A DNA stretch of 64,000 nt. Origin: Octopus bimaculoides (Eukaryota). This document shows positions 27,101 to 30,100 of this stretch, piece by piece; within the stretch, counting starts at the first letter, position 1, and every line of letters starts with the position of its first letter. The DNA lies in NCBI RefSeq assembly GCF_001194135.2, contig NC_068983.1, positions 135,542,210-135,606,209 of the forward strand, given 5' to 3'. A program made the translations under genes and the position numbers. A model generated the notes under the pieces. That model was given only the letters and a program-made list of their open reading frames with translations, searched no databases and was not told the DNA's origin.

Positions 27101-30100
27101 ATTGATTTAAGCTCTGAAATGGTTATCTGGTTAGCTTTCCTTATATTACTGTTTTAGTTCAAAATCTTAGTCAAGGATGCTGTCAACATAAAAAACAAGT
27201 TTCCCTGTTAACTTTAACCAATTACCCAGCATTACAGGTTTTGCTTTTTCAGCAAGACACAAGGTTCATGTGGGAAGAAGTAAAAAATATATGGTCAGGA
27301 GATGAAACATTAAAAAAAGAGTAGTATTAAAATATGTACACATCTATGTCTAAAAAACTAAAATTATTTCATCAACTTATTTGGAAAGAACTGGTGTTAA
27401 AATTACTATTTATCCTAGTCAGAACAGGTAAAATTCCTACCTTAACAGGAAGTAGTCAAAATCTAAACATTATGCAACTGGCAACTGTTAGTCAGTCAAA
27501 GATTCAATTAAAACAATTGTTTTGTTGATTGGTTATTTTTACCAGATGGCTGCTGAACGTCAAGTGTATCAGTCATTTTATATGTATACACACATCGTGT
27601 GTGCCTGCACGTGTACATGTTTTGAAAATTGCAAGTTTATTCAGTTTTTAAATTAAATGTAAAAAAAAAAAAAATCAATGATAATAATAGTACATATTTA
27701 ATTAAAAGTAAAAATGTTAGTGTTTTTAAAATCTAACAAAAAAAAAAAAAAATCCCAATAAAATAAAATGAAAACCTCACTAAGTCATAAGAAAAAGAAT
27801 AAAGATTTTTTATCATTGAATCAATAAATACCAATATTCAATACAGAACAACATGGAGTTGAAAAAAAAAAAAAAAATTTTGTTTGAATTTTTTAAGATT
27901 GCTGATTTTAAAAAGCTGCTTTATCTTCAAATAATGTTTGAAAAGAAATGGAATGAAACATTGACCTAATTAAGGTGAAAGATTTTAATCCTACCTGAAT
28001 CGTTTTAGATTAAATGTGCTATATGCAGGATTGACTAAGAGACATAGCAGAATAAGATTTATAAAAAATAAAGTAACATAGTCAATTACAAGAAACCAAT
28101 ACAAAATTAAAAGCAAGTGATAGGATTGAGGAAATGAGAAGGAAAATATATAAGCTATGACAAGGATGAAAAGAAGGAAAATATAACAGACAATGAAAAA
28201 AATGATAAAACACAAAGCAAAACCTATTAAAAGTAATATCAAAGTATAAAGCCAAAATACACAATTATTTTTGTAAAATGGCAAACCAATATTTTGAAAT
28301 GGTGTTTTTAAGAAAGCAATGAAACCAAGAAAAAAAAAGGTGCAAGATATCAACCTTTACAATCTTCAGTGTTAAATTGCACACATGAAATCATAACAGA
28401 ACAAAGTGTGTACATGTGTGTGTGTGTGTGTGTGTGTGTGTGGGGGGGGTGTGTGTGTGCATGAGTAAGAGATGTTAAACTGAATGTTAAAGCAAAGATG
28501 TGAAAGACAACAGATTTATAGATTGAATGTGAAAAAGGAGAAGAGGAGTGAGGGTTATTTTCAATTAAGTTACAGATAACAACAAAATATAAAGAACAAT
28601 ACTGAATGTTCCAGAAACTTACAGATGAAAGCTAACAGGTGAGGAGGACAAGGGTGGTTAAAATAAGGTGAAATGATGTGTAGAGGGAGGGAAAGAAAAA
28701 ACAAAAACAAAACAACCATGCCTGCTAGGTGCTGAAAAGCTAAAGAATGTCGGGGCAGGAGTGTGTGTTAACCCAGCAACCAACCTGTATTCTTCTTGAC
28801 CTGCTGTGTCCAGAATATCCAACAGACAAGTATCCCCATCTATGACAACCTGTTTTCTGTAGGAGTCCTCTGAAAAGGAAAAAAACAAATTAACAATGAA
28901 ATTTAGCCAACGTTTAAAACCAACCTGTATTCTTCCTGACCAGCTGTGTCCAGAATGTCCAACAGGCAAGTCTCGGAATCAATAACAACCTGCTTTCGAT
29001 GAGAATCCTCTGAAATGCAAAGATACCAAAGTTGAAATGCTTTTCAAAGATTATTTGAATATAGCCTCACTATAAAGAATGTCAATAGGGACCAGGGACA
29101 AGGACCTCAGCTTACATCCATCTGTGTAATCACACTGTCACCTCTATCATATTGGCTCTTGCTGCTCCTCAAAAATTGATGCAAGCATCTCTTCCCTTCA
29201 ATCCCCTTTTGTTTAATCTCTTACACCTTTCATCTAAATATTCTGCTTTAGAATTTATCCCCACTATATTGCAGAAACCCAAGCTGAACATTAGCTCTAC
29301 CCAGATACTATTCTGAATGTAAGATGAACTTGAAAAAATGTAAACATGCACTGACTTCTTAATTTAAAGATAAAACCTTTTTTTACATTTGCCATAGGTA
29401 TTGGGAGCATTTATGCTATCATAGATAAAAAATAATTTTTTTTGACAGTACTGGAGTTATTGCTAATAACTAATGCAATGGCCTGTGGGTGAGATGTGAG
29501 GTTTCCAATGACTCAGAAAGTGCCAAAAAATTTAGTCTTTTTTTTATGTACTGCATTAGTGCATGTATATTCCTTTGCAGCAAACCACAATTCATGCACC
29601 CATACCCATTTTAATCAATTTGATAATTCATAAAACTTTTAAAAGCTGATGGTGTGCCATAATACTTTTTAATGCCTTATTCAGAGGGTAAGAATAAAAA
29701 AAGATTGAAAAATGCTGTCCTAGAGAGATAAAAGGTAAAGTCCATCCTGGCAGTATTTGAATTTGATAAATAGAATTGCAAATTAAATACTAATCAGATA
29801 AGCAAACATTTCTGCTAAACTCATACCTTTATAAATATATAATACTTTTTTCAAAGCTGGTTAGCCAGTTTCCATGGTGTACAAGTGACCAAGACAACAG
29901 CATTCCCTTAAATGGGATGCTAGTCCATTGCAGAGTTCAAGTTGATTACATCAACACCAGCACTTGACAGATATTTTATCAACTCTAAAGGGTCGAAAGG
30001 CAAAGTTGATTTCAGTAGGATTTGAACTCAGAACGTAAAGAGATGAAAGAAATGTGCTAACATATGTGCCACATGCTAATGATTCTGCCAGCTCACTGCC

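Follow-up and report, generated by a model that had tools for sequence, protein, structure and literature searches.

Tandem alternative exons for the switch region in the canonical Ras gene of octopus and cuttlefish

The 64-kb stretch of DNA analysed here (the window, to whose positions all coordinates refer) contains most of a single canonical Ras gene of an Octopus species, closest to KRAS4B and lying on the minus strand. Within this gene, two neighboring exons of 85 nucleotides (nt) each, the upstream exon A (29009..28925) and the downstream exon B (28869..28785), encode alternative versions of the same part of the G domain, residues 37-65, which covers the last part of switch I, strands beta2-beta3 and the beginning of switch II. 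The evidence from annotated isoforms, spliced transcripts and sequence comparison supports the view that one canonical Ras gene gives rise to two G-domain isoforms by picking either A or B. The probability of the whole reading -- an ancient tandem pair of switch exons, of which one copy enters each mRNA and both copies have been kept by purifying selection -- is put at about 85%, its functional and regulatory side being inferential.

The two switch exons and their splice sites

The coding exons were located with a tblastn query of human HRAS, every match being inspected. Exons A and B differ at 16 of their 85 nt, which correspond to ten synonymous codons and three residue changes (Y40H, G48S and D49E, going from B to A), with no indels and no stops. 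By sequence and translation, exon A runs from E37 to part of codon 65 and carries H40, S48 and E49; exon B encodes the canonical peptide except that it has D49 in place of E49. E49 is the ancestral state, while H40 and S48 are variant residues.

Each exon is preceded by a CAG acceptor and followed by the same donor, CAG/GTTGGT, which is unusual in this gene, the constitutive exons using GTAAGT or GTAAAA. The pyrimidine tract preceding the acceptor reaches 14 of 20 positions before A and 17 of 20 before B in octopus, and the tract of B is the stronger one in both octopus and the cuttlefish Sepia (17-18 vs 14). The two exons have the same phases: the first codon borrows one base from the upstream exon, the last two bases belong to a split codon, and each of the two exons joins in frame to the 29-nt exon on the one side (35815..35787) and to the 103-nt exon on the other (11283..11181). 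They are separated by a mini-intron of only 55 nt (28924..28870), which has the weak GTTGGT donor, two candidate branch sites (TTCAT and TTAAT) and an extended pyrimidine tract. The pair is part of a repeat (family D4) with a unit of 140 nt and 81% identity over 112 nt, splice-site flanks included; the blastn match between the copies within the window has an E value of 1e-12 to 5e-16, a similarity far beyond chance.

An earlier, sequence-only reading of the window had described two 85-nt exons with AG acceptors, pyrimidine tracts and the donor AG/GTTGGT, phase-matched and in frame between the 29-nt and 103-nt exons. All of these elements were found again at the same coordinates, with a translation that agrees, and a recount of the nucleotide and codon differences gave the same figures as before.

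Both exons in mature transcripts

A query with the exon-A protein returned a single cephalopod cluster, P0002, which includes two proteins of 185 amino acids (aa) each, P0121 and P0122, that differ only in this segment. P0121, with exon B, is annotated in RefSeq as HRas isoform X1 in Octopus bimaculoides and O. sinensis, and Argonauta hians has it as well. P0122, with exon A, is the RefSeq HRas isoform X2 of the same two Octopus species, and in each of their genomes X1 and X2 share one locus of about 150-158 kb. A second pair in this cluster, P0124 (exon B) and P0125 (exon A), comes from transcript assemblies of sequencing runs; two of the runs with exon B, SRR19578112 and SRR1386223, are from Sepia esculenta according to passages in papers that cite them.

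Full-length spliced mRNAs of cuttlefish are available for both forms, with four exon-A contigs (L002-L005), from four separate runs, and 15 exon-B contigs. Among the 15 cuttlefish-type mRNA contigs that were fetched, four contain A only and 11 contain B only. When L004 (A) is compared with L013 (B), and L002 (A) with L008 (B), the members of each pair are identical over 1.24-1.31 kb, including both untranslated regions (UTRs), except at 18 positions, all of which fall inside the 85-nt exon. Since the A and B mRNAs are identical everywhere outside the exon, UTRs included, they represent one gene with an exon swap and not a pair of paralogues. The earlier proposal that one Ras gene makes two G-domain isoforms through mutually exclusive exons is thus borne out, both by the RefSeq X1/X2 pair and by the A-only and B-only mRNAs of cuttlefish.

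Age of the tandem arrangement

A query with the frame left open through exon B led to P0246, the product of an open reading frame (ORF) that stays in frame all the way through exon A, a short intron and exon B. It is found on four independent 3.4-kb contigs, L016-L019, which come from a cuttlefish-like species and represent DNA or pre-mRNA. In these contigs the intron between A and B is 56 nt long, as against 55 nt in octopus. The sole block that blastn could align between the octopus window and L016 spans positions 29046..28770, with 87.6% identity over 283 nt. By segment, the identity between octopus and Sepia is 66% in the 60 nt upstream of exon A, 86% in exon A, 83% in the mini-intron, 99% in exon B and 57% in the 100 nt downstream of exon B. 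The octopus-Sepia alignment includes the conserved 3' end of the long intron preceding exon A (29046..29010), consisting of the acceptor region TTTGCATTTCAG and sequence upstream of it. Downstream of exon B, one near-identical island (28740..28712, that is 45-73 nt 3' of the exon; GCTTTTCAGCACC-TAGCAGGCATGGTT) stands out amid an otherwise diverged intron. No octopus-Sepia alignment was obtainable for intron sequence farther from the twin exons.

As the same tandem layout is present in octopus and cuttlefish, the duplication is older than the split between the octopus and decapodiform lineages, which lies a few hundred million years back.

Selection on the two copies

Selection was assessed by Nei-Gojobori counts between octopus and Sepia, expressed as synonymous (dS) and non-synonymous (dN) divergence. 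Exon A has undergone 12 synonymous changes (19 sites) and no non-synonymous ones (68 sites), for a dS of 1.38 and a dN of 0. The five constitutive exons together show 44 synonymous and three non-synonymous changes (dS 0.90, dN 0.010), and exon B shows one and none (dS 0.057, dN 0). Between A and B within a species, dN is 0.064 and dS is saturated. Octopus, Sepia and a second decapodiform (L005) have the very same exon-A peptide. With 12 synonymous changes and not one non-synonymous change, exon A behaves as a coding exon under strong purifying selection, in which H40, S48 and E49 have been maintained; the dN of 0 for both exons is in keeping with the earlier impression, gained from the octopus copies alone, that both are under purifying selection.

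These results also dispose of the view that exon A is a duplicate out of use or in decay, or that the duplication is an assembly artefact in which alleles or paralogues were merged. Exon A has intact splice sites and a dN of 0, it is present in full-length spliced mRNAs from four separate runs, and the identical UTRs of the A and B mRNAs point to one gene. The tandem order of A, intron and B on four contigs of another genus, and also in the annotated loci of two Octopus genomes, rules out the mis-assembly of alleles or paralogues that the sequence-only reading had named as a danger. This alternative is refuted, and what probability it retains is negligible.

Exon B, for its part, is nearly frozen, with a change at one of 85 nt as opposed to 47 of 382 nt in the constitutive exons (Fisher P = 0.0007), and it differs from the single exon of an oyster at only 9 of 85 nt. 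For this near-invariance at synonymous sites, neither structure nor annotation yielded an explanation. RNA structure as a cause of exon choice or of the conservation of exon B found no support, since no stable fold was found over the 350-nt block (z = -0.6 in octopus and -1.4 in Sepia, no better than shuffled sequence). There is no inverse complement of exon B anywhere in the window, no overlapping ORF on the strand opposite exon B, and no Rfam family above threshold. In octopus, an AT-rich inverted repeat of 24 nt, 92% complementary, brackets both exons (27922-27945 and 29040-29063); it has no counterpart in the cuttlefish contig and is therefore probably due to chance. The synonymous conservation of exon B would be a sign that the RNA of this core signalling gene is under a constraint not recognised before.

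The protein difference and its possible bearing on effector coupling

The canonical motifs of the Ras G domain -- the P-loop GAGGVGKS, T35, DTAGQ, NKxD and SAK -- are all present in both P0121 and P0122. The best PDB matches of the octopus Ras are KRAS4B chains (E about 4e-102), and its scores with TIGR00231 small_GTP are 151-155 bits. The effector loop YDPTIEDSY (residues 32-40) is intact in the exon-B isoform; in the exon-A isoform it reads YDPTIEDSH, deviating in its last residue. Over residues 1-86, only four substitutions separate isoform A from human KRAS (D30E, Y40H, G48S and I84V). The canonical 29-residue peptide is present in 110 of 125 close Ras homologues, among which H40 and S48 occur only in the coleoid A forms. 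A short exon-A peptide query for forms with H40 or S48 in other taxa retrieved only short fragments, none of them with H40.

The two variant residues lie where they may well matter. Residue 40 closes the effector loop, and Y40C is a classical effector-loop mutant, which separates PI3K signalling from that through RAF and RalGDS. Residue 48 lies in the beta2-beta3 'switch III' loop, which is in contact with the cysteine-rich domain (CRD) of RAF. Residues R41-G48 of KRAS have been mapped as the interface with the RAF1 CRD (PMC7895934), and the switch III mutations G48R and D47A/E49A affect both the nanoclustering and the output of Ras (PMC4563131). A survey of Ras evolution, in which molluscs are unmentioned, speaks of strict conservation of the switch regions across eukaryotes (PMC9882654). 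Because residues 40 and 48 lie in mapped effector interfaces, it seems somewhat more probable than not that Ras-A and Ras-B differ in their effector coupling and that the functional difference is real.

Exclusivity and exon choice

Since 85 is not a multiple of three, the inclusion of both exons and the skipping of both exons each shift the reading frame, so that only mRNAs with a single one of them are productive. Inclusion of A and B together leads to a stop within the 103-nt exon and a product of 103 aa, while skipping both leads to a stop after 38 aa. Neither of these aberrant products was found among about 15 billion catalogued proteins, though this is a weak negative, as nonsense-mediated decay (NMD) and the assembly process would hide them. 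Any mRNAs with both exons or with neither would presumably be removed by NMD; both NMD and steric interference have been documented as mechanisms of exclusivity for exon pairs of this kind (PMC4165533). Steric interference is a common explanation where introns are short. In the 55/56-nt intron, the candidate branch sites TTCAT/TTAAT are only about 26-33 nt from the weak GTTGGT donor, and the shortness of the mini-intron might sterically resist splicing of A to B, an idea that to us has somewhat less than an even chance of being right.

Exon B is probably used by default, as its pyrimidine tract is the better of the two and more of the mRNA contigs contain it. The choice between the two would be regulated by way of the weak donors, the mini-intron and the downstream island, all of which are conserved. 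This Sepia-conserved island includes the sequence GCATG (28721..28717), 64 nt after exon B, which is the core of an Rbfox-type site; the GCAUG island may be a candidate Rbfox-type enhancer, and is to be taken only as a lead.

Twin exons in other phyla

The hemichordate Ptychodera (L026) and the annelid Capitella (L025) have the same exon boundaries in their Ras genes, with one copy of the 85-nt exon. Twin exons are found in the limpets Patella vulgata (L020, 13502-13586 and 13635-13719) and P. caerulea (L021, 12737-12821 and 12870-12954), in both cases 48 nt apart; the copies encode identical canonical peptides and are two or three synonymous nt apart, and the copy-specific differences are common to both species. 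The nemertean Lineus longissimus has twins of the switch exon (L023, 10587-10671 and 10723-10807, with a 51-nt intron) and also of the P-loop exon (L023, 8999-9047 and 9091-9139, with a 43-nt intron), again with identical peptides in each pair; for Patella and Lineus taken together, twin copies are two to five synonymous nt apart. One Lineus protein sequence is named both isoform X1 and isoform X4, and the breaks in the recorded gene ranges coincide exactly with the twin exons, which suggests that either Lineus copy is used. The isoform interpretation put forward in the sequence-only reading therefore stands for the cephalopods, while the duplicated exon, as a gene structure, is not theirs only, as limpets and a nemertean have twins as well.

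The mini-introns of coleoids show no significant likeness to those of Patella or Lineus (P about 0.26), so that a shared origin of the duplications cannot be claimed; on this comparison, one ancient duplication followed by homogenisation would look the same as repeated independent duplications. Twins that give rise to different proteins are so far seen in coleoids alone.

Some further sequences bear on the exons of this gene in other animals. The oyster Saccostrea echinata has one intact switch exon followed by a minisatellite of units of about 47 nt (L022, 7518-7900), each of which consists of the last approximately 34 nt of the exon plus the donor site. The Mya arenaria protein P0023, named 'HRas isoform X3', has L27 in place of H27, and it may represent a protein-changing twin of the P-loop exon, since codon 27 spans the junction between the P-loop exon and the 29-nt exon. 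Three of the Ras matches are likely gene-model artefacts: P0004 of Mytilus edulis, with an inserted GAGGVAGGVGKS; P0001 of Acipenser sinensis, with a doubled G domain flagged as contamination; and P0123 of Octopus vulgaris, with a 68-residue N-terminal extension.

Weighing of the alternatives

Several observations count against the reading of the octopus pair as regulated, functionally distinct isoforms. For Octopus itself, the support consists of RefSeq models, together with the transcripts of cuttlefish. The identical-peptide twins of Patella and Lineus indicate that such pairs can persist without any difference in protein. The Ras gene of Capitella teleta splices constitutive introns of 53, 55 and 64 nt (L025 7511-7563, 7416-7470 and 7249-7312, approximate positions), so that a length of 55 nt cannot be called too short in itself for this group; this weakens the steric argument. 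As for the putative enhancer, the context in the island is GGCAUG and not UGCAUG, and GCATG is common in the window, with 147 sites on both strands of the 64 kb. (Shuffled sequences give an expectation of 113 +/- 11 such sites, and no shuffle reached 147.)

The limpet and nemertean twins lend themselves to a neutral account, in which both exons are spliced, the two proteins are interchangeable and the three residue changes have drifted in without harm; either copy would then persist only because part of the mRNA contains it. Tandem twins of this same exon with identical peptides are retained in Patella vulgata, P. caerulea and Lineus longissimus, and D49 also occurs in the unrelated Ras sequences P0330 and P0335. 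Yet H40, S48 and E49 of exon A and D49 of exon B are the same in octopus and in two decapodiform lineages, and drift at free positions is not expected to stay fixed in every lineage. Synonymous sites in exon A are moreover near saturation (12 of 19 changed, against none of the 68 non-synonymous sites), and Y40 and G48, which sit in mapped effector interfaces, are otherwise invariant in the close homologues examined. We consider the neutral account improbable.

Another possibility is that the exon pair mainly sets dosage, with double inclusion or double skipping tuning the share of Ras pre-mRNA that goes to NMD and the difference in protein being secondary. This would suit the 85-nt length, by which both aberrant outcomes shift the frame; introns of the size of the mini-intron can be spliced, as Capitella shows; and the identical-peptide twins of other phyla would agree with a function at the RNA level. 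It leaves the strict conservation of the A-specific residues unexplained, however, and the products of double inclusion and double skipping are not in the protein collection, though NMD and assembly would conceal them. Its likelihood appears lower still than that of the neutral account, and quite small.

The preferred reading thus remains that of two isoforms, each maintained by selection. A bolder extension of it, which is speculative and in our judgment has the odds against it, would credit coleoids with two differently wired products of a single Ras gene, dating from before the octopus-cuttlefish divergence: a canonical Ras and, through regulated splicing, an H40/S48 form with altered coupling to RAF (RBD and CRD contacts, switch III orientation) or to other effectors. 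The pair would have arisen from a twin-exon habit of lophotrochozoans, whose 'silent' twins with one and the same peptide would hint at a function of the RNA itself, and exon B would be frozen by a second code in its RNA, for instance one for splicing or for editing.

Other features of the gene and the window

The other coding exons of the gene, like the 29-nt and 103-nt exons, are all constitutive and on the minus strand. The 49-nt P-loop exon (49381..49333) begins at A11 and ends with two bases of the H27 codon; it is present as a single copy in octopus. The 29-nt exon, which splices to A or B, supplies the last base of H27, then FVEEYDPTI and the first base of E37. The 103-nt exon, which accepts A or B, supplies the last base of S65 and then 34 residues (SAMRDQ... 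when read from S65 on). It is followed by a 40-nt exon (9917..9878) encoding 13 residues and by a 161-nt exon (5418..5258) encoding LVGNKVDL...TLVREIRKY, with the NKxD and SAK motifs. The coding part of the last exon, 60 nt including the stop (3105..3046), encodes a polybasic tail and a CAAX box, in agreement with the C-terminus of P0121 and P0122. Exon 1 (MTEYKLVVVG) is absent from the window, and all other coding exons lie inside it.

The intron upstream of exon A contains repeats of about 200 nt that resemble short interspersed nuclear elements (30550-31490), and on the downstream side of exon B there is a (GT)n microsatellite (28406-28442). A match to SCARNA7 over this microsatellite was dismissed as spurious (22.8 bits, with a threshold of 65).

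Significance and comparison with known systems

The switch regions of Ras have been treated as invariant from yeast to man, and the output of Ras in animals has been thought to be diversified by way of gene duplicates or C-terminal splice forms. Coleoids have a natural alternative effector core (Y40H, G48S), kept by selection since before the divergence of octopus and cuttlefish. The exon pair offers a natural test of how positions 40 and 48 tune effector choice, engagement of the RAF CRD and orientation at the membrane. The single copy of annelid and hemichordate, the identical twins of limpets and nemertean and the diverged pair of coleoids form a graded series, which should be useful for seeing how a redundant exon duplicate turns into a functional isoform switch.

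The isoform pair had been thought to be undescribed. No paper on alternative exons for the G-domain core of a canonical Ras, in cephalopods or otherwise, was found by full-text searches, which upholds that part of the claim; the pair is already present, however, in the automated RefSeq annotation as isoforms X1 and X2.

Among known systems, human RAB6A and RAB6A' are likewise products of a small GTPase gene with a duplicated exon, and are two full-length G-domain isoforms that are three residues apart (Echard et al. 2000, as cited in PMC11529276); they differ from the coleoid pair in belonging to a Rab, in a vertebrate gene, and in that their variable residues are not at Ras effector-loop or switch III positions. 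KRAS4A and KRAS4B likewise arise from homologous alternative exons in a canonical Ras, kept for hundreds of millions of years (PMC9882654, PMC7680328). Their last exons exchange the end of the C-terminal helix and the membrane-targeting tail, whereas the coleoid pair exchanges the segment from switch I to switch II. The Ras twins of Patella and Lineus involve the same 85-nt exon with the same phases and introns of 48-51 nt, but have identical peptides, unlike the coleoid A and B. Engineered Ras mutants such as Y40C, G48R and D47A/E49A hit the very positions that distinguish A from B (PMC4563131 for G48R and D47A/E49A); these are laboratory or tumour changes, with substitutions other than H40 or S48.

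With regard to splicing, exons 2 and 3 of alpha-tropomyosin and the let-2 and egl-15 genes of Caenorhabditis elegans likewise have adjacent homologous exons, a very short intron between them and a frame shift if both or neither are included; the C. elegans cases that are held to be sterically blocked have introns of 14-30 nt, compared with 55-56 nt in coleoids (PMC4165533). The mechanism, by which a tandem duplication gives rise to mutually exclusive exons, is thus well known; it is its place, the effector core of Ras, that is new.

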